The position numbers were made by a program, and so were the translations under genes. Positions 3,418 through 62,147 of a stretch of DNA of 64,000 bases are shown here, piece after piece. The stretch is taken from sequence record NC_019929.1; one strand, written 5' to 3'. Numbering within the stretch: position 1 is the first letter of the stretch; the number at the start of each line of letters is the position of its first letter. A model generated the notes under the pieces. It did not search any database. It worked only from the letters and a program-made list of their open reading frames with translations, and was not told the origin of the DNA.

Positions 3418-5274
3418 ATGGTAAAAGTAGTAGACACCAACGCAAACAACGCTTCTCAGAATGCTAACCTGAACACTGAAACTCAGGCACCTCTGGGCGG
3501 TAATGCATCTCAGCCTTCTGCTGCGGCAGCGGCTGCAAGCTCTCTCGGTAACGTGGGTCTGTTCGACCGTGCGTTCGGCTGGCAGAGCACCAACTCTTAC
3601 GCTTCCGCTTACGTTGCTCAACTCGAGGAACTGGCGAAAGAAAACTCCTACCTGCGTGGCTTCAAATGGGGCATCGTTGACGGCGTCGGCGCGGACATGG
3701 GTTCTGCGGCTTACATCGCTGGCGATTACAACGGTCACTGGCTGTACGGTATTCTGTTCTTCGAACGCGGTCAGTCTCTGCGTCTGAAAGAAACTACCGG
3801 TGGTGCTGAGTCTTACTACACCATCACTGAGCTGCTGGATACTGAGTTCCTGAAAACTGTATCCAAAACTATCCAGGCTACGCATCAGCTGCCTAACGCA
3901 CACTTCATGGCGGTGAACTCCGTACCTGACCTCGGCAAGCAGCTGAGCAAAGAGTGGGCGCAGCAGTTGACTGGTCAGCTGGCGCTGGGTATCTTCGGTC
4001 GTATCCAGGGCTTCCTGGGCCAGATGCAGCTGAGCAAATCCGATCGCTTCACCGCGCAGGTCTTCCAGCTGGACGATGGTTCTGTACTGGACGGCAACGG
4101 CCACGCACAACGTGCTGACTTCGGTGTGACCCTGGAACACGTTCCGGCAACCAGCGATAACAGCACCCCGACTCTGATGGACAACAGTCAGGCGCAGATG
4201 TATCCGCGTGTTCACGGTGTTGGCTATGTCAACATGCGTTTCACCGGCCAGAAACCTGCGGTTAACGGCGTGCCAGATCTCAAGCAGCTTCAGGCGGAAA
4301 TCGTCGTGTCGCTGATGGACTCTCAGGCCGAAGGTTCTCGCGTTCCGATGGAACGTCAGATTCTGGAACTGGCAGCGTTCGCAGAAATCGCCTCTATCGG
4401 CGGCTGGCGCGACCTGTTCATGAAAGGTCTGAACGGTACCGATCGTAAATGGTCTCGTGTGGTTGAATACCTGAACTGGGGTACCGACCAGCGTCCGGAC
4501 ATCTCCAAAATCGACAAGAGCCGCGAAGCGATTGAAGGTTGCCTGGATATGTTTGCACCGCGTGAAGCAGCGCTGGTTGTCAGCCATCGTGCCGGTAACG
4601 GTATCGGCGGTCTGTCTACCATCCTGTCTGAAATTGCCGGTAATTCCGATATCGCACTGAAACAGCTCCTCACCATTCTGAACGGCATGACCCCGCGTGC
4701 CAAGAAGTCTAACGACGAGCTGATCGGTACCACCGGTACTAAGAACTTCACTCAGCGCTTTGCCGCCGCACTTGGCAAAGATACCATCACCTGTGCTGAC
4801 GTCGTGAAAGCTGCCGTACCTACCGTATCCGGTGTGTACACTGGTAACACCCAGAAACGTAGCTTCCAGGACATGGACCTGGTGTCTGTGCTGACTAAGT
4901 TCGGCGACAACCAAACTGATGTGTACACTTACCTGCACGCTCAGTCCTACTCCCACCGTGAACTGAACGCCCGTGCTCAGCGTATCTACATGCTGAAACT
5001 GGCTGCGGTTCTGTTCGGTGCTAAAGATGCGCGCATCACCGGCGAATCTCTGGACATGGCTGTGAACCCGGTATTCGCGAAATGCGTACTGGACTTCGTG
5101 CGTGAGAACTGCAACTGGCAGCTGACTGGCGTATCTGCGCACAACAGCATCGCTAACTCCCTGTTCTTCAACAACGGCGGTGAGAACTTCACCCTGTCTG
5201 GAACTGGTAGCAGCGCGCAGGGTTCTGACTTCTCTCTGGGTGTATCAATCGGTAGCCTTGACCTGGGCCTGTAA
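3418..5274 (+). CDS. chmA: Chimallin, major phage nuclear shell protein
   Basis: 618 aa with strong codon bias. Segments DGNGHAQRADFGVT, QKRSFQDMDLVSVL and ITGESLDMAVNPVFAKCVLDF match the pattern I recall for 201phi2-1 chimallin. Lies immediately upstream of nvRNAP beta'. Confidence 0.85.
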   Translation: MVKVVDTNANNASQNANLNTETQAPLGGNASQPSAAAAAASSLGNVGLFDRAFGWQSTNSYASAYVAQLEELAKENSYLRGFKWGIVDGVGADMGSAAYIAGDYNGHWLYGILFFERGQSLRLKETTGGAESYYTITELLDTEFLKTVSKTIQATHQLPNAHFMAVNSVPDLGKQLSKEWAQQLTGQLALGIFGRIQGFLGQMQLSKSDRFTAQVFQLDDGSVLDGNGHAQRADFGVTLEHVPATSDNSTPTLMDNSQAQMYPRVHGVGYVNMRFTGQKPAVNGVPDLKQLQAEIVVSLMDSQAEGSRVPMERQILELAAFAEIASIGGWRDLFMKGLNGTDRKWSRVVEYLNWGTDQRPDISKIDKSREAIEGCLDMFAPREAALVVSHRAGNGIGGLSTILSEIAGNSDIALKQLLTILNGMTPRAKKSNDELIGTTGTKNFTQRFAAALGKDTITCADVVKAAVPTVSGVYTGNTQKRSFQDMDLVSVLTKFGDNQTDVYTYLHAQSYSHRELNARAQRIYMLKLAAVLFGAKDARITGESLDMAVNPVFAKCVLDFVRENCNWQLTGVSAHNSIANSLFFNNGGENFTLSGTGSSAQGSDFSLGVSIGSLDLGL

Positions 5275-10709: not shown

Positions 10710-11384
10710 ATGGTCAATCAAAATATTTTCAAAGAGAAATGGCTTTATCCGCAGACTGAACCGGATCAGCAAAACCGTACCCGTAAGTTGGGTATTGAGC
10801 CGAATGATTTTAACGGTGATGTCGAAGGCATGAAGTTCAACTATTCCTTCGCTAAAGGTGAAGGTCTGTACTTCTCTGCCCCCTTGACCGTTTGCCGTGA
10901 CATCGTTGATACGCTGATCGCCACTCTGTCTAAACCAGAAAAATCGGTGATTAAGTTTACCAACGAAAACGGCAACAAACCGCCGGTCAGTATTCACGTT
11001 GGTCGTGATGAAAACCTGGTACCGTTCATGGCAATCTCTGGTGAAATCCAGGGCGCAGGCGCGCGCCAGAAGAAGTTCTACTTCTCTTATCCGAAAGGCT
11101 TCCGTGTATTCCGTAACGGTGAGCAGGTAAGCGATCTCGAATTGGCCGAACGTGCATGTCGTGCGTTTACCAAAAACTTCGACCTGTTCGTGCGTGACCT
11201 GGAAGAGAAGTACAAGCCGCGTGAGTTTAACAACACAGGCGGTGGTAACTTCGGTCGTGGCGGTTATAATGGCGGTGGCGGTAATGGTGGCGGAAACCGT
11301 GGTGGTAATAACGGTGGCGGTTATCAGCAGCAGCAGCAGTCTCAACCTCCGGCAACGGATTCCAGCTACGACGATTTCGTATAA
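10710..11384 (+). CDS. chmC: Nucleic-acid-binding protein with G/N/Q-rich tail, probable ChmC (phiKZ gp67-like)
   Basis: Lies just upstream of the gp68-like and PicA-like genes. Globular N-terminal region plus low-complexity tail GGGNFGRGGYNGGG...QQQQQ ending in acidic YDDFV. Confidence 0.55.
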   Translation: MVNQNIFKEKWLYPQTEPDQQNRTRKLGIEPNDFNGDVEGMKFNYSFAKGEGLYFSAPLTVCRDIVDTLIATLSKPEKSVIKFTNENGNKPPVSIHVGRDENLVPFMAISGEIQGAGARQKKFYFSYPKGFRVFRNGEQVSDLELAERACRAFTKNFDLFVRDLEEKYKPREFNNTGGGNFGRGGYNGGGGNGGGNRGGNNGGGYQQQQQSQPPATDSSYDDFV

Positions 11385-13179: not shown

Positions 13180-14943
13180 ATGGCAATGAAATTACTGAAA
13201 CTCGCAATGTATCCGGTTCAAGAAGTACCGGAGCAGATTCGTCGTCGTGTTGGCTTTAACGCCAGCACGGGTGCACTGGATGACCTCGCTACTGCGGTAG
13301 CCGTAGGGGGCACCAAAGCAACTGGTTCATTACAGTACCAGCAGGCGTTGTCACAAATCGTCGGCTTTGACGATACGAAGGAAGGCTTCGAGCGCCCATT
13401 CGTAAACGTCAGCGATAACGATGACAACCCAATCCAATTCCAGTTCGGGTCTAATGACACGGGTGTGTATAACTTCGTCGCGATTATCGTGGCGCAGCCG
13501 TTGGCGGGTACCCGTTCGCAGGAAACGCAGTATGTGGTTTCTGGTTACACCTCGCAGGCAGAGAAATCCCTGTTCGGTAAATTGCCAGATGACATGGTGC
13601 TGTACATTAACGACATCTACGGTCTGCAATGTACGTACGATGGTGATGGCCTGGGTGGTCGTCGTATCAACCCAGATTCCTATCGCCTGGTCGATAACTA
13701 CGTCCTGTCGAAATCACTGTCGCATATGGGCTACAGTGAAAACAGTGTGGACATCATCTCGGTGGCGAAATCCGCAGACATGGTGAAACGTATTGAACTG
13801 GCGTCGGACGAAGAGTTCATTCCAGATGCCAATACCATGTTGTCGCCGAATGCACAACATGCTCCACAGCTGCTGACCGGACAGTTAACCCGTCCAGAAG
13901 CGTTCGTCTCGGCTATCTCTAATGCGTACCTGTCAACCGCAGGTATCGATACGGAGCTGGGCCAGGTCGACAGCTTCTTTGCCGGTAACACCAGTATCGG
14001 TATCGATTCAGAACTGAGCAACCTGGGTGTGGTGCGTAACTTCAACAATTACGAACTCATCAAGGCCATGCGTTCTGCGCTGACCAATGCCACCTCCGAT
14101 GTAACCGGTGGCTGGAAAGCAACCAACAAAGCCACCTTCCGTCTGGCCGATTTACGTGCATGTATTTCGAACCCGCTGGATATGGATGTGTGGATTGGTG
14201 AATCGATCCGACTGGCTGAGCAACGTGGCCTGGGCCAAATCGAGCAGACTGATAGCTGGATTGGCTATAAAGACATGTCCACCCAGGGTTCACTCGTGGC
14301 GTATGACCTGGCAATGATGCTGGGTGCAACCATGACGCGTAACCTGCTCGGTGAAGTGTCGTTCATGTTTGATAACCGTAACTCGGATATCCTGCAAGAA
14401 CCGAAACTTCAGGTCTTCCCGCACAACGTGGGTTCTCTGACCGATGGCCCACTGCCAGATGTAATGGCTCGCCGTTTCCTGAACGACCTGCGTGCGGTGA
14501 TGGTACAAGTTACCAAGCACAACCGCATCCGCTGTAAAATGGTGGTCACCTGCTTAGTCGGCACGGTATCTCGTATTGAGATTACTATCGATGGCGACTT
14601 AACCGAATGGTACACCTTCGCATCGTTCATGCAGTTCCGTCTGCATAACGGTAACACAACCGATCTCACCTACGCCGGACGCCTGGCGAAGAATACCGCG
14701 CACCTGCTCAAGACCGTTGAAGAAGGTTTCAATGCGTACGAGCGTGACAACGGCATCAGCCGCATGAAGTCTAACCTACCAACCGGCTCTACAGGCGGTC
14801 TGGGTAGTGATTTAGGCGGACTGAATCCGAACGCGGTACTGGGCGACTCTTTAGGAGGTGGCCTGGGCGGTGGATTGGGTTCCGATAATCTCACCGGTGG
14901 ACTCGGTGGTGGTTTGGGCGGTGGTAAGCGCGGCGGACTCTAA
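13180..14943 (+). CDS. picA: Phage-nucleus protein import factor PicA/Imp1 (phiKZ gp69-like)
   Basis: 587 aa, directly after the gp68-like gene; C-terminal GGLG-repeat tail. Assignment is mainly by synteny. Confidence 0.6.
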   Translation: MAMKLLKLAMYPVQEVPEQIRRRVGFNASTGALDDLATAVAVGGTKATGSLQYQQALSQIVGFDDTKEGFERPFVNVSDNDDNPIQFQFGSNDTGVYNFVAIIVAQPLAGTRSQETQYVVSGYTSQAEKSLFGKLPDDMVLYINDIYGLQCTYDGDGLGGRRINPDSYRLVDNYVLSKSLSHMGYSENSVDIISVAKSADMVKRIELASDEEFIPDANTMLSPNAQHAPQLLTGQLTRPEAFVSAISNAYLSTAGIDTELGQVDSFFAGNTSIGIDSELSNLGVVRNFNNYELIKAMRSALTNATSDVTGGWKATNKATFRLADLRACISNPLDMDVWIGESIRLAEQRGLGQIEQTDSWIGYKDMSTQGSLVAYDLAMMLGATMTRNLLGEVSFMFDNRNSDILQEPKLQVFPHNVGSLTDGPLPDVMARRFLNDLRAVMVQVTKHNRIRCKMVVTCLVGTVSRIEITIDGDLTEWYTFASFMQFRLHNGNTTDLTYAGRLAKNTAHLLKTVEEGFNAYERDNGISRMKSNLPTGSTGGLGSDLGGLNPNAVLGDSLGGGLGGGLGSDNLTGGLGGGLGGGKRGGL

Positions 14944-14961
14944 TTTAAGGATTATGCACCC

Positions 14962-16326
14962 ATGAAGATTATTGACTTTTATACCTCGTTCCTGAAATCA
15001 CAAGGTTACGGGTTTGCAGCAGACTTACTGACGACCGATGACGGTCATCCGGCTGAGTTTACGTACAACAAAGTGAAGCGCCGTCTGGCGCTTCCTACCC
15101 CGGTCATGATTAAGAAAGGCATGGAAGACGACGATGGTCGTGAATGTCATGCTTTCCATCCGCTGTGCGAATCTGTACTGTCGGGCGAATCAGGCACCAT
15201 CCGTTTCCTGAAGAACAGCATTAAGACCCAGCTGTTCCTGCGCAACTTCGAACTGATTGATGCGATTCTCGAAACGGCAGCAGCAGGTAAGTCGGTACGT
15301 CTGGCCGGATACAAGAAATTCCTGAGCGATGTGATTTGCGAAGGGATGAAAGATCCGACCTTTGACGAGCGCCTGGTGAAATCCTGGGAAGCGGTGAAGG
15401 CGTACGTGTACGGCTTGTTGGAAAACGACAAGAAGTACAAAGTCACCAACATCTTCATTACCCCGTCAATGGAAATTGATGGCGTGAAGTTCATCCGTGT
15501 GGCTAACTATAAGCACATGTTTGAAGAAGAGTCCCTGGACGGTACCGCAACGTACTTCGGTGCGAAGGTGCAGCGTAAACAGGATAAAGTTATTATCCAC
15601 CGTTTACTCACCACCCTGTTTGGCTGGTATCCAGATGTCGTAGGGTCAAATGACTCTCGTCCGTACTTTGGTTGTCTGGCGCGTGGTTGGGCACAGTACG
15701 TGGTCAATTATAACCAGATTGTCAAAGGTCTGCGTGACCATACCCATCTGAAGCCACTGGAAGATGAGTGGATTGCTCAGCTGGATAACATGGAAGTGTA
15801 CGACAACGTGATTCAGACGTTACCGTACAATACTGGCCCACGTTCTGATACACCTGAAAAGGATACCAGTGCGCACGATTTCCGTTTAGATCGCCAACCA
15901 CCGGGACAACAGATCCCGATGAAGAAAGCGTCTGATGTGGCACCGGCCGAAGCAATGGATGACGATGACCCGGTTGCCTTCTTCCGTAAACGTGCGGCGG
16001 TAAACTCGACGTCGAACCCAATGAAGAACCTCTCTCCGGCCTTGCAGCGCATGTACGAAGAGAAAGGTAACATTGACCTGAACAAGCCCGAAGTGGCGCG
16101 TGTGTCGTTGGTTGATGCTTTTGGTGGTAAGAAAGAAGAGAAAGGTCTGAGTCTGCTGGGTAGTGGTGGTGGACTTGGCGGGGGTGGATTAGGCAGCAGT
16201 GGCGGCCTGGGTTCACTGGACAGCGCACTCGGAGGCGGCGGCTTAGGCGGCGGTGGTCTGGGTGGAGGCTTAGGTGGTGGGTTGGGCGGAAGCGGTGCTT
16301 TCAGCTCAGCGTTCAGCCGGGCATAA
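14962..16326 (+). CDS. Conserved nucleus-associated protein (phiKZ gp70-like)
   Basis: 454 aa; FHPLCESVLSGES core and a GGLG-repeat tail; follows the PicA-like gene. Confidence 0.55.
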   Translation: MKIIDFYTSFLKSQGYGFAADLLTTDDGHPAEFTYNKVKRRLALPTPVMIKKGMEDDDGRECHAFHPLCESVLSGESGTIRFLKNSIKTQLFLRNFELIDAILETAAAGKSVRLAGYKKFLSDVICEGMKDPTFDERLVKSWEAVKAYVYGLLENDKKYKVTNIFITPSMEIDGVKFIRVANYKHMFEEESLDGTATYFGAKVQRKQDKVIIHRLLTTLFGWYPDVVGSNDSRPYFGCLARGWAQYVVNYNQIVKGLRDHTHLKPLEDEWIAQLDNMEVYDNVIQTLPYNTGPRSDTPEKDTSAHDFRLDRQPPGQQIPMKKASDVAPAEAMDDDDPVAFFRKRAAVNSTSNPMKNLSPALQRMYEEKGNIDLNKPEVARVSLVDAFGGKKEEKGLSLLGSGGGLGGGGLGSSGGLGSLDSALGGGGLGGGGLGGGLGGGLGGSGAFSSAFSRA

Positions 16327-16333
16327 AAGAAGG

Positions 16334-16363
16334 AAGAAGGGACTGGGCGTCCCTTCTTTTTTT
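16334..16363. terminator. Bidirectional terminator
   Basis: AAGAAGGGAC-TGGGC-GTCCCTTCTT with A/T tracts, between convergent genes. Confidence 0.75.
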
Positions 16364-16688
16364 AGTCTTCGATAACGGTCGAGAGTATGTCATTGACGAC
16401 GCTGACATCCGGAACAAGCAGTTCGGTAATGGCAGGGGTGAAATTCATCGGGTCTTCTAACCCGTTGAGCAACATCATTGGGAAGACGATTGACGCATCG
16501 TAATCTTTGAGTCGGCAATAGGCATAGAAGTTGTGAATCTCTGGCCAGCTGTATCTCGGGTCAACAATCTCGGTTTTGGTCTTGGGGTGTTTACGCAAGA
16601 AGTCGGTGTAGTCGTGTAACACCTTCCAGGTTCTGGAACTGGGCGAAGGTATCACCTCGGTTAGGGTAGCAAAACTATCGAGCATCAC
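16362..16688 (-). CDS. Small conserved protein, possibly LysM/T4 gp53-like
   Basis: 108 aa with AGGAG RBS; pattern FYAYCRLKDY...MMLLNGLEDPMNF...LLVPD. Confidence 0.5.
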   Translation of the reverse strand: MMLDSFATLTEVIPSPSSRTWKVLHDYTDFLRKHPKTKTEIVDPRYSWPEIHNFYAYCRLKDYDASIVFPMMLLNGLEDPMNFTPAITELLVPDVSVVNDILSTVIED

Positions 16689-16753: not shown

Positions 16754-18994
16754 ATGAAGACACCAGTCGAACTCATGAGTAGTGTGGCTGACCGCGAAGC
16801 GGGCATTTCAATGGTATCGGGTGCGCGTGCATCCATGGTCGGTGGACATATGAAGTCCGCTGTGCCGGTAGACCATCCGCAGCCGTCCCCACACTTCACG
16901 GGGGCAGACGTGAACTACCACGACTTCGCCTTCAACGATATTGTTGAAGACAGCGGAACAACGTGTAGTTACATTACGAAAGACGGGCGTCAGCGACGTG
17001 CAACGTTTGCACGTTACGGTCGGCAAGGCGACTCTAAGGCATTGGAGTATGCCATCTTCTTTAAACGGGCTGAGCAAACAGTACAGAAGAAGACGATGAT
17101 TGATGTGTTGGAGATTAACTTCTACACCAACCACGATAACGTCTTCTCCTCAGAAAAGCGCGAAACGAATAAGTTGCGTTCGCTCTTGAACGGGGAAACC
17201 GAGCAGTTAGAAAAAGACGAAATCCTGACGACGTTCAACGCACTGAAAGACGGTGAGTTTGTCGATGGGGTAAGTCTGTCCACGGTGACGATGTCGCACC
17301 CTGACATCATTGAAGATGCGTACACCATCTCCAAAACCGCGGCATCGGTCATGCACGCATTCGGGTTGAAGACTATTGACTTCTCCTTGCGTGATGATGA
17401 GTTCCTGTTAGATGCGTATGGCTTTACCGATTTCAATGGGGTGCGCATTCCGCGCTATATGCCGTTGGTGGGTGATGCTGTGCGTGATGATGGTCTGGTG
17501 ATTGCAGCCCGTCGTTTTGATAAGCTGTACGCGGCAATTGATACCACACTCGGGGAAACGCAACACATTTCCCCACACATGGATCGTTGTGAATACGTGG
17601 ATGCCGATCCCGAACATTATCAGGCCAATTTAGATAATGACCTCGAGAAGATGGAACGGACAGGCTCGCGGGTGGTGGATATTCAGGTGTGGCGTGACGA
17701 AACCAGTTGCAGCCATGGCACCAACAATATCAACTGTACCGAAGAGAACAAACGCGAACTGGATAAGTACGCGATGGCACTGAAAGAGTATTACCGTGGC
17801 ATCGTGCGCTTCTACTTCGCTATGTCTCAGGACAAGAGCATTGTCTGGTCGCCAAAAGCCTGCGTGTTGCTGGACAAAGCCTTCGCTTCGGAAACTTACG
17901 AAGTGTATTCTGAGTTCCGTGATGAAATCAAGCAGGTGATTGACGAAGCTATCCGTCGTGGTGAGTACGGTAAAGACGGTGTGTCACAACAGATTATTTC
18001 CAAGCTGACCTCTCCGGTACAGCGCAGTCTGCGTGACCCTATCAATACCTATACCATCAAAATTGTGGTAAGCTACCCGATCCCGGTAACGGTGTCATCG
18101 AAAATCACTGACCGTTCAGGTACCAAAGGTATCGTGGGTCGGGTGCTGGACGATGAAGACATGCCGATTAACGAGTTCGGTGAGCGTGTTCACGTTATCC
18201 GTTCCATGAACGCCGTGGTACGTCGCTCGACCTACGCTGCGTTGTTCCACATGTATTGGTCGGCGGCGTCTGAGCAACTTAAGCTGCGAATGAAGCCTGA
18301 ACTGGATGCAGGTAACATCAATGGGGCCTGGGCAGTCATGATGGACTATCTGATGCGTTATAATCCCGATTGGGTTAACGCATTGAATGCCACGCATGAC
18401 ACAGATGAGCTGAAACAGAAACTCTTCGCAGAGATTTATGATTTCACCATCCGTATCTGGATGCCGCATGAGCTGGATGATTTGCCGGTGGACATCTCTG
18501 AACGTCTGGGCGAGTTCAAACCGAAGAAGTCGAAACTCCTGATTACCAATTACGACGGTAAGAAAGAGTGGACGAAGAACGAGTTCTACGTGGGCTTAGT
18601 GGAAACGTTGCGTCTGGATAAAACCGGTCGTGAGTTCTCCAGTATCTCCTCGATGTACCTGAACTTCATGGGGACTATCGATGCCTCTAATCAGGGCCGT
18701 GGCTCGTATCCGATTAACCTGAAAGGCTTAAAGTGGGGCGGGCCATCTGAGCACCGTTTACTCGAAGGCTTTGGCCCAGGCAACTATGACGAAGCGCATA
18801 ACCGTGCTAATGACCCGGCGGTTCACCGTGCTATCGTTACTGGGCTGTATAACTCTCCAACTCCAACTAACCCTGGTTACTTGGTGGATCGTAAGAAACT
18901 GCCAATGGGGGATTCGCAAGTGGATAGAATGATTCGTAACATTCACCGCGCCGAAGGGTTTGAGTTAATCCGTCCAGTACGGGAGGAGAAATAA
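16754..18994 (+). CDS. nvRNAP beta subunit, C-terminal part (phiKZ gp71-73-like)
   Basis: SSKITDRSGTKG keeps both lysines of the GDKxxxRHGNKG motif; also ARASMVGGHMKSAV and LKWGGPSEHR. Confidence 0.85.
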   Translation: MKTPVELMSSVADREAGISMVSGARASMVGGHMKSAVPVDHPQPSPHFTGADVNYHDFAFNDIVEDSGTTCSYITKDGRQRRATFARYGRQGDSKALEYAIFFKRAEQTVQKKTMIDVLEINFYTNHDNVFSSEKRETNKLRSLLNGETEQLEKDEILTTFNALKDGEFVDGVSLSTVTMSHPDIIEDAYTISKTAASVMHAFGLKTIDFSLRDDEFLLDAYGFTDFNGVRIPRYMPLVGDAVRDDGLVIAARRFDKLYAAIDTTLGETQHISPHMDRCEYVDADPEHYQANLDNDLEKMERTGSRVVDIQVWRDETSCSHGTNNINCTEENKRELDKYAMALKEYYRGIVRFYFAMSQDKSIVWSPKACVLLDKAFASETYEVYSEFRDEIKQVIDEAIRRGEYGKDGVSQQIISKLTSPVQRSLRDPINTYTIKIVVSYPIPVTVSSKITDRSGTKGIVGRVLDDEDMPINEFGERVHVIRSMNAVVRRSTYAALFHMYWSAASEQLKLRMKPELDAGNINGAWAVMMDYLMRYNPDWVNALNATHDTDELKQKLFAEIYDFTIRIWMPHELDDLPVDISERLGEFKPKKSKLLITNYDGKKEWTKNEFYVGLVETLRLDKTGREFSSISSMYLNFMGTIDASNQGRGSYPINLKGLKWGGPSEHRLLEGFGPGNYDEAHNRANDPAVHRAIVTGLYNSPTPTNPGYLVDRKKLPMGDSQVDRMIRNIHRAEGFELIRPVREEK

Positions 18995-21099
18995 TGCAGG
19001 GTCGTCACGTTCACGTTCGACAACTACGGGCACTGAATTCTGATCAAGTGTGGAAGCTTCGCGGGCGGTATTACGTGGAGTTTGATGACGGGAAGAAACT
19101 GGAGATGGCCTCTCGACACATCAAGTTGAGTTGGCCGTACTGGGGTATCTCGCGGTTCTATCCGCAAGTACCAACCCCATCGTCGCTGGCCTACCGTCAG
19201 GATGAGGTGGCCACGGATGACCGCCACATTGACTTTATGTCTGAGGCGAGTGTGCTGGCGCGTAAGGCGGGTATCGATCTCGCCGATACGCGTTATATCC
19301 TGAGCCAACATGTGTACGCTGATGCGTTCAACATGACGGTAAAGAACCTGCTTGCATACTGTACCACCATCGACTATGACACGATGATGGAAATCTATAA
19401 CCACGAGAACTTCGAGATTATCCGTGGGTGGGCCAAAGCCTATCCAACCGGGTATGACGAAGAAGGCGTGGATATGGTGGAGGAAGCGTATAAGCTTATC
19501 GAGAAAATCTTCCAGGACCCGGCACTGAAATACAATCCGGTGGTGATGTCGGTACTCGACAAAACCATCAAGATGAACCAGGTGCTCCAGGCATTCGTGC
19601 GTGGTAAAACGTCCGAGATTGACTCCCGCGTTTACTCCAATCAGGTGTGGGAAGGTTTCTTCACCGGGATGCATTCGGTCATCAGTCGACTGAAAGAGTC
19701 TGGCGCAACCTCGCGTTCGCATCTGTACAACACAGATAAGATTGCCGAAGCAGAGTACGCCTCGCGTAAATTGCAGCTGGCCGCGAACGTGCTGATGTAT
19801 TTCAGCTACGAGGACTGTGGGACGGAGCATGTTCATCATCATACCTTCCAGGACGTGACGATTGACATCAAAGCCCACAAGGCGATGAAGGGGATGCGTT
19901 ATCGCTTTGACGGCGAGACGGGCCCATGGCGTCGCTTTGAAGAAGACGAGTTCGATCAGGTCGTCGGTAAGCCTATCGTCTTCCGCAGTGCTATGACTTG
20001 TAAGAAGATGGCCGATCAGGGCATCTGTGCGATCTGTATGGGTGATTTGATTTACAACCTGTCTGAAGGCACATCACCGGGTCACCTGGCCTCTACCTCC
20101 ATCTCGGAGAAAGGTACCCAGGGGATTCTGTCCACCAAACACCTTGACTTCCTGCGTTATCTGCTCAACCTGGTGTTGACACCGCGCATGAAAGATTATC
20201 TGGTTGAGCACAAGCACAACTCCGTCAAAGGACTGTGCCTGCGGCCGAAGCCACAGTTTGGCGTGTGGGAAGAGTACGAACTCGTGGTTTCAGATAAGGT
20301 GTATTCCGAACTGAGCCAGATTGCGTACCATGAACACCTGGACGACATTGATGAAACGGCGTTACCGGAAATCACCGACCTGACATTCTACCGTCGGGAT
20401 GCGGATGGTCAGGTACTGTCCGAAGATTCGGTGGATGTGCGCATGGGGGTCTGTGGAAACTTCTCCAAAGCCTTCCTGCACTTCTTCTTGAAGCAGCGTG
20501 TTGACCTGCGCTTCCCCACCAAGAAAACGGTACACATCCCGTTGAAAGGCTGGGGCCAGAAACAACCACTGCTCATCTACACCAACCGTTCGGAATCCAT
20601 GGCAGAGTTCGTTGCCGGTCTTGAGACCAAGCTGCGTTCTGTTGCTGCGGATAAGAACGATGAAGTCGTGGAGATTATCAACGCCAACACGACGATGAAG
20701 ATGAACAAGAAGCAGGGCCGTGTGAAGCCAATCACCTTAGTGGAGATGGGCGGAGCCACGGAGAAACAGTGTACTTATGCACTGTTCGATACGTTCAAAT
20801 ACATCCAACGCAAGCTGGGTGGTATCCCGATGACGCATATTGCGATAATGCTTGCTATATCGCGTGTGGAATCCCCAACGAATTCGTTCCCGGCAGTCGG
20901 CTTTGACAGTGAAGAAGCCACCACTGTTTCCGGTAAACGTTTCGTTGACCACAATACGCTCATTGCGATTCGCTCAGCAGGCCCGATGTTGTTGTTCGAA
21001 GGTCAGCAGAATAACCTCGATAATGTCGGGTTCTATACAGATCACCACATTCCAGCCTCGTTGTACGATGGTGGGTTAGGTGCCGTGGTGGTGCATTAA
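18994..21099 (+). CDS. nvRNAP beta' subunit, C-terminal part (phiKZ gp74-like)
   Basis: YASRKLQL, EDCGT, FRSAMTC...GICAICMG zinc site and trigger-loop-like TQGILSTKH. Confidence 0.85.
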   Translation: MQGRHVHVRQLRALNSDQVWKLRGRYYVEFDDGKKLEMASRHIKLSWPYWGISRFYPQVPTPSSLAYRQDEVATDDRHIDFMSEASVLARKAGIDLADTRYILSQHVYADAFNMTVKNLLAYCTTIDYDTMMEIYNHENFEIIRGWAKAYPTGYDEEGVDMVEEAYKLIEKIFQDPALKYNPVVMSVLDKTIKMNQVLQAFVRGKTSEIDSRVYSNQVWEGFFTGMHSVISRLKESGATSRSHLYNTDKIAEAEYASRKLQLAANVLMYFSYEDCGTEHVHHHTFQDVTIDIKAHKAMKGMRYRFDGETGPWRRFEEDEFDQVVGKPIVFRSAMTCKKMADQGICAICMGDLIYNLSEGTSPGHLASTSISEKGTQGILSTKHLDFLRYLLNLVLTPRMKDYLVEHKHNSVKGLCLRPKPQFGVWEEYELVVSDKVYSELSQIAYHEHLDDIDETALPEITDLTFYRRDADGQVLSEDSVDVRMGVCGNFSKAFLHFFLKQRVDLRFPTKKTVHIPLKGWGQKQPLLIYTNRSESMAEFVAGLETKLRSVAADKNDEVVEIINANTTMKMNKKQGRVKPITLVEMGGATEKQCTYALFDTFKYIQRKLGGIPMTHIAIMLAISRVESPTNSFPAVGFDSEEATTVSGKRFVDHNTLIAIRSAGPMLLFEGQQNNLDNVGFYTDHHIPASLYDGGLGAVVVH

Positions 21100-59837: not shown

Positions 59838-62147
59838 ATGAAAGATACCCGAATCTCTAATCTGGAGAAGCTCGTCAACGCGGGTAACGAGCTTGTAGCC
59901 AACGTATCGGCTGGTACCTCCGCTTCCGATGTGTGGTCAACTGTTGTTGCTGGTGAATCTGTTCGTAAAAACGCGAAAGCTTTTAGCTCGCTGAACGACA
60001 GCGCTGCCCAGCAGTACCAAACCGTGTTCCCTGGCAAAAGCATGTCTCATGCTGCCCAGGTAGCTTCTGCAATGATTCTGGGTGCTGCCGGTCACGGTAT
60101 GGATCTGGTTCAGGCCGTTGCTCACGAAAGCGCGAATCCGAAGTACGACAAGTACATGCCGATCGCTATCCCTGGTGCCGCTACTCTGGCTGCTGACTAC
60201 GGTAAAGACCCGCTGGTTGCGCGTGAGTATTACACCAACAAAGACTACGACCGTAACCTGGGTCTGACCTGGACTCTGAACGTTCGTGCTCTGGAAACGC
60301 AGTCTAAGTTCGCTGAGACGCTGTTCCCAACCATCACCGTTGAAACCAACGATGTTGGTATTACCGTTCGTACCAAAGTTACTACTGTAACCCGTGGTAT
60401 TCTGAACGCGCTGCTGACCAAAGATGTGGTTGAAGACCACCGTCAGCCGCTGCACAACGCCCTGTCGAACCACAAAGTTCTGCAAGATGACGCGATTCGC
60501 ATCGTACCTTACGTGATGGAAACCGGCGACAACGCTGAATACTTCATCGACGCAGGCATCGTGCCGAACGAAAACGTGCAGCTGGGCCGCGTACCGCCGT
60601 ACCCAACTAACTACCTGACCTTCGAAAAAGAACGTCTGAACCTGTTCCAGCTGGCTGCTCATCCGGGCATCGTGCAGGAAGGTTACGACGAAACTGACGA
60701 AATCGCGCCAGGTGCTGCTCTGGGTAGCCTACTGATCTCCGTTCGTAAACCGAGCGAAGATGTTGCTGATGGTGCGCTGATCAAGCTGAACGTACGCGAC
60801 ATGCAGTTCGCTACCTTCCAGCGTCCTCCTGAAGGTGACGGTCGTGAGCTGGTGCTCCAGTTCCGTCGCACTGCGTTCTCTCTGAACGCCAAGTCTCTGG
60901 ACTGGAAAGGCGATGACATCCCTGCACTGGCTGCACTGGCTCAGAACCAGTACACGCTGAAGTACAGCATGAACATCACCATGTCACTGTTCACCAACGG
61001 TCAGTATTCTGGTCGTGTTGACGTGTCTGGTAAGTCACTGACCATCGAAGGTCTGTTCGACGCCACTGGTAACCTGGTCGATACCAAAACTGGTACCGGT
61101 AAAGTTATCATGGACGGCCTGAAACTGGAACTGCTGGGCTGGCGTTTCGACGGTACTCGTACCAACGAAAACCGGAGAACCCAGGGCTTGCTGCTGGACC
61201 CAATCTGGGAACAGGAGAACTACAAGCTGCAATACGGTTCCCCGATCATGACCAAATCGCCGGTTGGTGTTGAGTATGACGACACCGAGCGCCTGGATGA
61301 CCTGGTTTCTGCGGTTAACATCCGTAACGAAATGCTGGCTATCACCCAGACTCTGAGCTACACCGAAGCTGTGAAAAATGCTTTCGAAAGCATGATCACT
61401 CCGTGGGACAAACCAGCCATCCGTGGTCTGGGTCGTCACTGGGTTGCTCCGTGGTACAAAGAGAGCGACTACAACGTCGATCAGGTTATCCAGTCTCTGG
61501 ATACCAAAGATGCACTGATCAACGCCCGTCAGGGTCTGGTACAGCGTATCGGTGACCAGGTTACTCGTGCAATCCAGGACAGCCGCTTCATGCCTGCCCT
61601 GCGCCTGCTGACTGCTAACCCGGACGCACTGCCGAAAGTCGTTATCGCAACTGATGAGCCAACTGCTGCTATGCTGCTGCTGACCCAGGGTGACCAGCGT
61701 CTGCTGGGCGATCGCTACGAGTACGAAGTCATCACCACCAACGATGACCGCTGGCGTATCTGGAATGCCGCGGATGAGTCTTGGACTCGCCGTCTGCAAT
61801 GGGTACTGAAAGTGCCTACCGTTGATGACGGTTCTTACTGTGTTCTGAACTGGGGTAACCACTTCTGGTCTCCGATCATGGTAACCAACATCAACATCCA
61901 GCGTAACGGCGCGACCAGCAAAGAGCTGGCTGTGCAGCCACGTAACGCCCACATCTGTCACTGCCCGATCACTGGCCTCATCTGGATCAAAGGTATCACC
62001 AAATACGTTGAAAGCAAACTGGCTTACAACGTGTCTGTTGAATCCAATGGTACCGGTGCGACCGATGGCGGCAACGGCGGTAACGTAGGCGGCGATACTA
62101 CTGGTGCTGGCACCGGTGGTACTGGCGGCGCGGGTACTGGTTCTTAA
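59838..62147 (+). CDS. Major capsid protein precursor (phiKZ gp120-like)
   Basis: 769 aa from ATG 59838; extreme codon bias, candidate maturation site VARE-Y, FAETLFPTITV and QPRNAHI; G/T-rich tail. Confidence 0.85.
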   Translation: MKDTRISNLEKLVNAGNELVANVSAGTSASDVWSTVVAGESVRKNAKAFSSLNDSAAQQYQTVFPGKSMSHAAQVASAMILGAAGHGMDLVQAVAHESANPKYDKYMPIAIPGAATLAADYGKDPLVAREYYTNKDYDRNLGLTWTLNVRALETQSKFAETLFPTITVETNDVGITVRTKVTTVTRGILNALLTKDVVEDHRQPLHNALSNHKVLQDDAIRIVPYVMETGDNAEYFIDAGIVPNENVQLGRVPPYPTNYLTFEKERLNLFQLAAHPGIVQEGYDETDEIAPGAALGSLLISVRKPSEDVADGALIKLNVRDMQFATFQRPPEGDGRELVLQFRRTAFSLNAKSLDWKGDDIPALAALAQNQYTLKYSMNITMSLFTNGQYSGRVDVSGKSLTIEGLFDATGNLVDTKTGTGKVIMDGLKLELLGWRFDGTRTNENRRTQGLLLDPIWEQENYKLQYGSPIMTKSPVGVEYDDTERLDDLVSAVNIRNEMLAITQTLSYTEAVKNAFESMITPWDKPAIRGLGRHWVAPWYKESDYNVDQVIQSLDTKDALINARQGLVQRIGDQVTRAIQDSRFMPALRLLTANPDALPKVVIATDEPTAAMLLLTQGDQRLLGDRYEYEVITTNDDRWRIWNAADESWTRRLQWVLKVPTVDDGSYCVLNWGNHFWSPIMVTNINIQRNGATSKELAVQPRNAHICHCPITGLIWIKGITKYVESKLAYNVSVESNGTGATDGGNGGNVGGDTTGAGTGGTGGAGTGS

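Follow-up and report, generated by a model that had tools for sequence, protein, structure and literature searches.

Glycine/leucine-rich tails on the PicA/Imp1 orthologue and its neighbour in Erwinia phage phiEaH2: possible adhesion modules at the phage nuclear shell

Introduction

In the nucleus-forming phages of the family Chimalliviridae, the essential and selective protein importer is PicA, which was identified as gp69 of phage PhiKZ (PMC11087766), is also named Imp1 (10.1101/2024.03.27.586873) and corresponds to gp63 of phage PhiPA3. Its punctate localisation on the nuclear shell and its requirement for import are known for PhiKZ, PhiPA3 and Goslar only (PMC11087766). For the passage of proteins across the closed shell of chimallin (ChmA), a pore, a flippase-like mechanism and an unfoldase have been offered as options, and neither a pore nor a transport receptor is known for the phage nucleus (10.1101/2024.03.27.586873). 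Here we describe a pair of adjacent genes (positions 13,180 to 16,326) within a window of 64,000 nucleotides (nt) from sequence record NC_019929.1, coding for the PicA/Imp1 orthologue of Erwinia phage phiEaH2 and for its downstream neighbour, a member of the PhiKZ gp70 / PhiPA3 gp64 family. Both proteins end in predicted disordered tails that are rich in glycine and leucine and are kept by selection on the protein, and the type of hydrophobic residue ("sticker") in these tails changes in step in PicA, gp70 and the shell protein ChmA.

The neighbours of PicA are also known at the shell. PhiPA3 gp61 (ChmC), gp63 and gp64 are all shell-localised, and an SPN3US homologue is listed for each (PMC10643120); PhiKZ gp70 is among the listed nuclear proteins (10.1101/2024.03.27.586873). 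The disordered tail of PhiPA3 ChmC drives the formation of condensates and is required for shell localisation (10.1101/2023.09.22.559000). A disordered, condensate-prone tail at the phage nucleus is therefore already known, for ChmC. An earlier note, made from the phiEaH2 sequence alone, had likened the tails of the two proteins described here to the FG repeats of nucleoporins, and had proposed that they form a cohesive gate or mesh at pores of the phage nucleus or mediate co-assembly of the two proteins. Taken as a whole, this interpretation is partly supported by the analysis below.

Results

Identity of the two tail-bearing proteins

The stretch from 13180 to 16326 is 100% identical to phiEaH2 (JX316028.1, genus Erskinevirus), a phage of the bacterium Erwinia amylovora that is related to SPN3US. 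The same stretch is 99.4% identical to phage Stratton and 84% identical to phage Asesino, and the identity of the window proteins to their SPN3US counterparts is about 65%. Judging from sequence, phiEaH2 almost certainly belongs to the nucleus-forming Chimalliviridae, because a 618-amino-acid (aa) open reading frame (ORF) in the window is 91% identical to the Asesino shell protein gp39, of which a GFP fusion encircles the phage DNA inside infected cells (PMC11724907). ChmA is thus encoded together with PicA, as is to be expected of the PicA family. The ChmA homologue gave no match in the PDB by sequence and none in Pfam.

The 587-aa protein matches phrog_3141 over its full length (E 9e-160), as does PhiKZ gp69 (E 3e-179), and direct BLASTP between the two gave a collinear alignment (E 8e-4). 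Its ORF is located between homologues of gp68 and gp70, upstream of the gene for the beta subunit of the non-virion RNA polymerase (nvRNAP), as in PhiKZ, PhiPA3, 201phi2-1 and 12 other phages. By protein family and gene order the 587-aa protein is the PicA/Imp1 orthologue, an identification on which the hypothesis of the earlier note had been made to depend. The 454-aa protein belongs with PhiKZ gp70 in phrog_3520 (BLASTP E 2e-10), and its gene lies directly downstream of picA, indicating that it is the orthologue of PhiKZ gp70 and PhiPA3 gp64. Both ORFs, together with the tail strings quoted in the earlier note, are present in the translations. The searches by tblastn and by protein words with the phiEaH2 proteins reached the SPN3US-like clade only; the link to PhiKZ came from the common PHROG families and synteny.

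The phiEaH2 protein shares with the known PicA its PHROG, its place in the gene block, a similar length and a folded domain without structural relatives. A Pfam search gave no match for either tail protein, and PDB searches by sequence and Foldseek gave no significant relative for PicA or the N-terminal domain of gp70 (best E 0.18 and 0.049; TM-scores 0.1-0.2), in agreement with the published statement that PicA is without structural homologues. PhiKZ PicA differs in that it ends in a Gln/Pro/Asn-rich tail of about 26 aa without Gly/Leu repeats, in place of the 55-aa tail of phiEaH2. The 454-aa protein agrees with PhiPA3 gp64 and PhiKZ gp70 in PHROG and position, and in every clade examined this family consists of a folded N-terminal domain followed by a long low-complexity C-terminal half. 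The neighbour had been called a shell or import protein; the former holds in so far as PhiPA3 gp64 is associated with the shell (PMC10643120), but the family is not known for import. In the section consulted of the antisense-screen paper (PMC12571901), the listed hits do not include PhiKZ gene 070.

Composition, predicted disorder and selection

The limits of the tails were set by profile hidden Markov models of the conserved parts and by AlphaFold2. Of the 55 residues of the PicA tail (aa 533-587), 24 are Gly, 12 are Leu and 5 are charged, and the gaps between hydrophobic residues are mostly 4-5. The 65-residue tail of the gp70 orthologue (aa 390-454) has 30 Gly and 12 Leu; its charged residues number 7, of which five lie within the first five positions. 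Both tails are thus 44-46% Gly and 18-22% Leu, with a hydrophobic residue every 4-5 positions (about 12-14 per tail), and the rest of the non-charged residues are Gly, Ser, Thr and Asn. The length of 50-60 aa given in the earlier note is correct for the PicA homologue, but too short for its neighbour, whose tail has about 65 aa. When all six frames of the window were scanned, five segments had at least 13 Gly per 30 aa, and those bearing Leu were only these two adjacent C-termini.

In the AlphaFold2 model of the PicA orthologue, made from an alignment of 24 sequences, aa 1-532 are folded (mean pLDDT 73, pTM 0.71) and aa 533-587 have pLDDT 32-43. The gp70 orthologue is modelled with confidence over aa 1-287 (pLDDT about 90); most of aa 288-454 fall under 50, the Gly/Leu tail having 35-38. 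Both tails are therefore predicted to be intrinsically disordered.

The DNA that encodes the tails is not itself repetitive. Tandem Repeats Finder detected no array at score 30 or above, the longest exact DNA repeat within a tail is 9-10 nt, and all GGLG tetrapeptides, five in the PicA tail and seven in the gp70 tail, are spelled by different DNA. Between phiEaH2 and the Asesino-like locus L018 (93% identical), the codon differences in the tails of PicA and gp70 include 19 and 25 synonymous, and 15 and 13 non-synonymous ones, respectively. The dN/dS values are 0.23/1.22 (about 0.19) for the PicA tail and 0.22/1.88 (about 0.11) for the gp70 tail, compared with 0.04/0.69 and 0.07/0.87 for the respective folded parts; these ratios are rough because dS is close to saturation. 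As judged from these substitutions, the tails are under purifying selection, which in PicA is weaker than on its folded part. The absence of a DNA repeat, the differing GGLG spellings and dN/dS of 0.11-0.19 indicate that selection acts on the protein and not on the DNA, as the earlier note had concluded from the varying codons in arguing against slippage.

The Leu codons are evenly spread in the tails, CTG being used for 4 of 12 in PicA and 6 of 12 in gp70, compared with 32 of 50 and 20 of 32 in the respective gene bodies. This even use fits avoidance of repeated DNA, although the numbers are small. Opposite the tail DNA, the minus strand contains open frames at 14670-14894 (74 aa) and 15722-16228 (168 aa), which are Pro/Arg/Ser-rich and unannotated in every relative; these frames are a by-product of the GGN-rich codons.

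Tails of related phages

The SPN3US-like clade was sampled with 17 IMG/VR loci, and with 37 PicA and 42 gp70 proteins from a large protein collection. Both tails were found in every SPN3US-like member examined, but the sticker differs by lineage. Gly/Leu tails are carried by phiEaH2, the Asesino-like phages and SPN3US; Ser-Leu-Leu or Asn-Ser-Leu-Leu-Asp tails by ChrisDB, Caitlin and Wellington-like phages; and Asn-Pro-Phe and Gly-Phe tails by CR5, Derbicus and Phobos. True FG repeats (SFG, GFG, FGG) were detected in four uncultivated contigs, L005-L008, where PicA tails have 4-5 FG and gp70 tails 5-8. The earlier note had asked whether G/L or G/F repeats are present at the C-termini of homologues; both kinds occur within this clade and are not the chemistry of the other clades sampled. 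In the ChrisDB/Caitlin-like phages (loci L009-L011; proteins P0009-P0019 and P0050-P0063), the PicA tail contains two copies, and the gp70 tail one or two, of a motif of 6-7 residues, Thr/Gly-Asn-Ser-Leu-Leu-Asp, which looks like a shared short linear motif, exceeding mere composition.

Outside the SPN3US-like clade, the PicA tails are 0-32 aa in length and are Gln/Pro-rich, charged or absent. The 55-aa tail of phiEaH2 is the longest PicA tail in the survey. A HMMER scan with the PicA profile against 1.84 billion representative sequences yielded 52 proteins. Some of these are distant and about 500 aa long, and in most the tail is short or charged. The gp70 family keeps a long low-complexity tail throughout, extending 109-340 aa past the N-terminal domain. 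The chemistry of this tail differs by clade: Gly/Leu, FG, Asn-Pro-Phe or Ser-Leu-Leu in the SPN3US-like phages; Met/Gln/Pro-rich in PhiKZ, PhiPA3, RAY, SA002 and SNUABM_48; and Arg/Asp/Glu-rich in Moabite, PhiEaH1, Centimanus, RSF1, SPLA10 and pVa-21. Among the gp70/gp64 homologues of 14 diverse phages (loci L002 and L020-L033), the C-terminal half is always of low complexity with clade-dependent chemistry. The Arg/Asp-rich tails resemble the charged tails of eukaryotic RNA-processing proteins, and in pVa-21 and PhiEaH1 the PicA tail is likewise Arg/Ser/Asp-rich. In phage Churi (OM718002.1), the gp70 homologue beside PicA is annotated as 'Med15 subunit of mediator complex protein', a label that is probably false and caused by the Gln-rich low-complexity tail.

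Concerted change of the sticker residue in PicA, gp70 and ChmA

Across representatives of 11 lineages, the PicA and gp70 tails correlated in their Phe-minus-Leu index (r = 0.92, permutation p 7.5e-4), and the Gly fractions of the two tails were also correlated (r = 0.75). Matched PicA/gp70 pairs have on average 2.18 common 4-mers compared with 0.95 for mismatched pairs (p 0.002), and in one lineage a 7-residue motif recurs in PicA and gp70 beyond the expectation from composition (p 5e-4). The exchange of the sticker is near-complete and bimodal, with Leu at 0-0.05 in the F-type tails and Phe at 0-0.08 in the L-type tails. The F-type lineage L005-L008 is nested among L-type phages, closest to phiEaH2 and SPN3US, with 57-62% identity, and the F-type phages CR5, Derbicus and Phobos are about 42% identical to all others. 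The F-type is therefore found at two separate spots on the identity matrix, indicating at least two concerted switches.

The shell protein takes part in the same change. The disordered N-terminal tail of ChmA and its C-terminal end follow the same Phe-minus-Leu index (r = 0.94 and 0.92 for the N-tail), and the N-tail contains two FG motifs in the F-type L005 and L007 compared with 1-2 LG motifs in most L-type phages. As controls, the ChmC tail in the same genomes retains its Gly/Asn/Arg/Tyr make-up without an L/F switch, and the folded domains shift in F/L over a range of 0.03 compared with 0.36 in the tails, about ten-fold less. The GC content of the locus was considered as a cause of the switch and rejected, as it is only weakly related to the L/F index and explains little (r = -0.54, p 0.09).

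Similar C-terminal tips were noted for the PicA-ChmA pairs L046/L012, L047/L013, L048/L014 and L050/L017, and the gp70 homologue of L017 matches too. General copying of the ChmA C-terminal tip by PicA and gp70 was also rejected, as it holds for three SPN3US-like lineages and is not found in phiEaH2, SPN3US, PhiKZ or 201phi2-1.

Comparison with the tails of ChmC and of FG nucleoporins

ChmC (PhiPA3 gp61, PhiKZ gp67, also named Imp6) is encoded in the same operon as the two proteins, is likewise associated with the shell and likewise carries a Gly-rich disordered tail. The ChmC tail differs in being rich in Asn and Gly (and Arg, Tyr, Gln) and very poor in Leu and Phe; its tip is acidic, and RNA is bound by the folded Whirly-like domain of the protein. 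In the ChmC homologue of phiEaH2, the tail (about nt 11205-11384) is Gly/Asn/Arg/Tyr/Gln-rich and ends in a short acidic-then-hydrophobic tip, and such a tip was found in 14 of the 15 phage clades sampled. This homologue thus shows the Asn/Gly-rich segment followed by an acidic cluster that is typical of ChmC. The PicA and gp70 tails do not, as they contain Leu but little Asn and no acidic tip. A nucleic-acid-binding fold followed by a Gly-rich linker and an acidic tip, as in ChmC, recalls the layout of bacterial SSB.

The FG domains of nucleoporins (GLFG or SxFG type, such as Nup98) resemble the phiEaH2 tails in several respects: they are disordered and low in charge, with Gly/Ser/Asn/Thr/Gln spacers and regular stickers, and the proteins that carry them lie at the edge of a DNA compartment. 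In phiEaH2, disorder is predicted by AlphaFold2, the charge is low (5 of 55 and 7 of 65 residues) and the spacers are uncharged. There is no homology, however, and the phiEaH2 tails have Leu without FG and about 12 stickers in 55-65 aa, in contrast to the hundreds of residues and dozens of motifs that give FG nucleoporins their high valence. The stickers are spaced 4-5 residues apart compared with roughly at least 12 in nucleoporin FG domains. No FG dipeptide is present in either phiEaH2 tail, and among the relatives FG motifs were found only in L005-L008. The nucleoporin likeness drawn in the earlier note thus stands for predicted disorder, low charge, regular hydrophobic residues and, in sister lineages, FG itself, but not for the motif or the sticker number in phiEaH2. 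Gly runs with bulky aliphatic or aromatic residues, with proposed weak adhesive contacts, are also known from the glycine-loop tails of keratin and loricrin and from other Gly-rich domains; these are unrelated proteins of unrelated organisms, and the likeness is in composition only.

Organisation of the gene block

The features of the locus are listed in Table 1. The two tail-bearing ORFs are separated by 18 nt on the same strand, and none of the genes in the region is broken. The order SbcD-like nuclease, gp66, ChmC, gp68, PicA, gp70, small minus-strand ORF and nvRNAP beta is identical in 15 phages, PhiKZ, PhiPA3, 201phi2-1, Moabite, SA002, RTH11, PhiEaH1, Centimanus, RAY, RSF1, SPLA10, C-ZP2022, pVa-21, SNUABM_48 and Asesino. 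The 548-aa and 224-aa proteins encoded upstream of PicA match the PHROGs of PhiKZ gp68 and gp67, respectively, and the two nvRNAP subunits form the downstream end of the conserved block. The palindrome between the convergent gp70 homologue and minus-strand ORF is probably a two-way terminator closing the operon. A minus-strand ORF of comparable size is present at the equivalent place in PhiEaH1, RAY, RSF1, pVa-21 and others.

The ORF for the second nvRNAP subunit (18994-21099, 701 aa) begins, like Asesino gp52, where the preceding gene has its stop codon. The GenBank coding sequence of this subunit in phiEaH2 begins 213 nt later (630 aa), and is probably short at its N-terminus. Far from the block, an open frame on the plus strand (window 62037-62144) contains a 36-aa segment rich in Gly, Thr, Ala and Asn.

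Table 1. Coordinates of the features in the 64,000-nt window (strand and basis of assignment)
Feature	Position	Strand	Basis
ChmA (nuclear shell protein) homologue, 618 aa	3418..5274	+	91% identity to Asesino gp39
Disordered N-tail of ChmA homologue, about aa 1-48	3418-3561	+	LG-type motifs; likewise at C-terminal end
ChmC/Imp6 homologue, 224 aa	10710..11384	+	phrog_3284, common with PhiKZ gp67
PhiKZ gp68 homologue (nvRNAP subunit), 548 aa	11514..13160	+	phrog_3209, common with PhiKZ gp68; synteny
PicA/Imp1 orthologue, 587 aa, folded aa 1-532	13180..14943	+	phrog_3141, BLASTP, gene order, AlphaFold2
Gly/Leu tail of PicA orthologue, aa 533-587	14776..14940	+	composition, pLDDT 32-43, dN/dS
PhiKZ gp70 / PhiPA3 gp64 orthologue, 454 aa	14962..16326	+	phrog_3520, BLASTP E 2e-10
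Folded N-domain of gp70 orthologue, aa 1-287	14962-15822	+	AlphaFold2; remainder disordered
Gly/Leu tail of gp70 orthologue, aa 390-454	16129..16323	+	composition, pLDDT 35-38, dN/dS
GC-rich palindrome, 10-bp stem, T/A runs on either side	16334..16358		sequence; terminator-like match
Small conserved ORF, 108 aa by ORF scan (107 aa annotated)	16362..16688	-	phrog_3455
Two nvRNAP subunits, 746 and 701 aa	16754..21099	+	phrog_3295, phrog_3015; tblastn matches to PhiKZ 071-073

Discussion

Based on these observations, we propose that the tails may be weak, multivalent adhesion modules that gather PicA/Imp1 and the gp70/gp64-family protein with the tails of ChmA at the shell, a reading to which we give a probability of about 0.45. 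Flexible Gly spacers with a hydrophobic sticker every 4-5 residues would make each tail a disordered sticker-and-spacer module. Weak adhesion of like with like would join PicA/Imp1 with the gp70/gp64-family protein, and the same adhesion would hold both against the similarly flavoured disordered tails of ChmA, giving a shell-associated hub. Contacts among the tails or with ChmA, which would govern localisation or clustering, are what we infer. The joint change of the sticker in PicA and gp70 favours a shared cohesive or co-assembly role, the part of the earlier proposal that gains from the present analysis, and the pore gate or mesh is conjecture. Adhesion is plausible because two precedents exist, the condensates of the ChmC tail and the engineered leucine-only FG-like repeats that phase-separate and stay selective if hydrophobic enough (10.1101/2022.10.14.512266). 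In the same study native transport receptors were specific to the motif, a parallel to the lineage-wise matching of stickers between the PicA and gp70 tails.

Several observations weigh against adhesion. Each phiEaH2 tail has only about 12 stickers, and the 4-mers common to the two phiEaH2 tails are explained by composition alone (5 observed compared with 5.8 after shuffling). The co-variation amounts to about ten lineages and two switches without phylogenetic correction, and the folded domains shift slightly in the same direction as the tails. The PicA tail is absent in RAY, SA002, SPLA10 and SNUABM_48, and is therefore not needed for the core function of the family. PhiKZ gp70 and Imp1 produced in E. 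coli did not co-purify (10.1101/2024.03.27.586873), although PhiKZ PicA carries only a short Gln/Pro tail.

Other explanations have to be weighed against the same evidence. The tails, chiefly their last residues, could instead imitate the N- and C-terminal docking segments of ChmA and plug into the grooves by which its protomers bind such tails, thereby tethering PicA and gp70 to the lattice. ChmA lattices are indeed joined by terminal segments docking on neighbouring subunits (PMC9365700), the ChmA tails share the L/F switch, PicA and ChmA encoded on one contig end in nearly the same 4-5 residues in L012, L013/L014 and L017, and a Gly-Leu-Leu-type C-terminal tip is common to PicA and gp70 of PhiPA3 and 201phi2-1. 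We consider such mimicry unlikely, and keep it only as a rival, because no likeness of the tips to ChmA exists in phiEaH2, SPN3US, PhiKZ or 201phi2-1; in addition, the repeats extend far past the need of one docking peptide, and the co-varying N-tail of ChmA lies upstream of the docking segment and is dispensable for shell incorporation in 201phi2-1 (PMC9365700). A less likely explanation still is that the tails are linkers or entropic bristles without a specific partner, which share a sticker by common descent and lineage-wide mutational or compositional drift. Tail length and chemistry do vary widely over the family, the tails evolve faster than the folded parts (dN 0.23 and 0.04 for PicA), Leu-to-Phe is a single base change, and the small parallel shift of the folded domains and the occurrence of just two switches agree with drift. 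Neutral drift is nevertheless disfavoured by dN/dS well under 1 in both tails, by the near-complete and bimodal replacement of the sticker next to a shift of only 0.03 in folded domains, and by the ChmC tail, which does not switch in the same genomes. The weak relation to GC content and the 7-residue motif shared beyond composition in one lineage also speak against it, and uncharged hydrophobic tails would be poor solubilising bristles.

In a gate of the nucleoporin type, many tails around an opening of the shell would form a cohesive hydrophobic phase, from which inert proteins are excluded and to which PicA-licensed cargo is admitted. Such a gate agrees with the closely spaced hydrophobic residues of the uncharged disordered tails, with the true FG repeats of L005-L008, with the selectivity of leucine-only FG-like phases and the motif-specificity of receptors mentioned above, and with the PicA punctum on the shell, where stalled cargo gathers (PMC11087766, PMC12908238). 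However, the tails are 26-78 aa in length with about 5-14 stickers, far from the hundreds of residues of nucleoporin FG domains, and no phase separation was seen for engineered repeats that had two Leu in every 12 residues (10.1101/2022.10.14.512266). The selectivity mutations of PhiKZ fall in the folded part of PicA (PMC11087766), many clades have a short PicA tail or none, the gp70 tails of other clades are Arg/Asp-rich or Met/Gln/Pro-rich, and no pore has been seen. These points weaken the gate of the earlier note, and we regard it as improbable; equally improbable is the wider claim of a convergence on the eukaryotic solution, in which LG/FG-like repeats of PicA, gp70/gp64 and ChmA form a cohesive phase at the import site and contribute to selective passage, with sticker chemistry co-evolving by lineage. 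An origin of the repeats by replication slippage, assembly error or a wrong frame, as might be suspected from the long frames that GGN-rich DNA leaves open on the opposite strand, is refuted, with a residual chance that is close to nil: the DNA contains no tandem repeat, two GenBank records are identical and phage Stratton agrees at 99.4%, and all 17 related loci and dozens of database proteins have the tails, which are under purifying selection.

Neither hydrophobic tails of the Gly/Leu or FG kind on PicA/Imp1 and gp64/gp70 nor their concerted switching with ChmA are described in the searchable literature, which lacked the Imp1 paper in its journal form. The searchable papers on PicA/Imp1 contain no mention of a tail and no link of PicA to intrinsic disorder or of the phage nucleus to FG repeats. 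New are therefore the presence, in a large phage clade, of a different and hydrophobic kind of tail on an essential importer and its conserved neighbour, and the switch of the sticker in step across importer, neighbour and shell protein. The natural relatives with true FG repeats, also new, allow a comparison of L-type and F-type as found in nature.

The tails give a concrete handle on which parts of these proteins meet at the shell. Under a modest reading, they would also explain the constant half-disorder of the gp70 family, and the clade-specific chemistries, Arg/Asp-rich or Met/Gln/Pro-rich, merit study in their own right. If the gate should prove true, the tails would represent a striking convergence with the nuclear pore.

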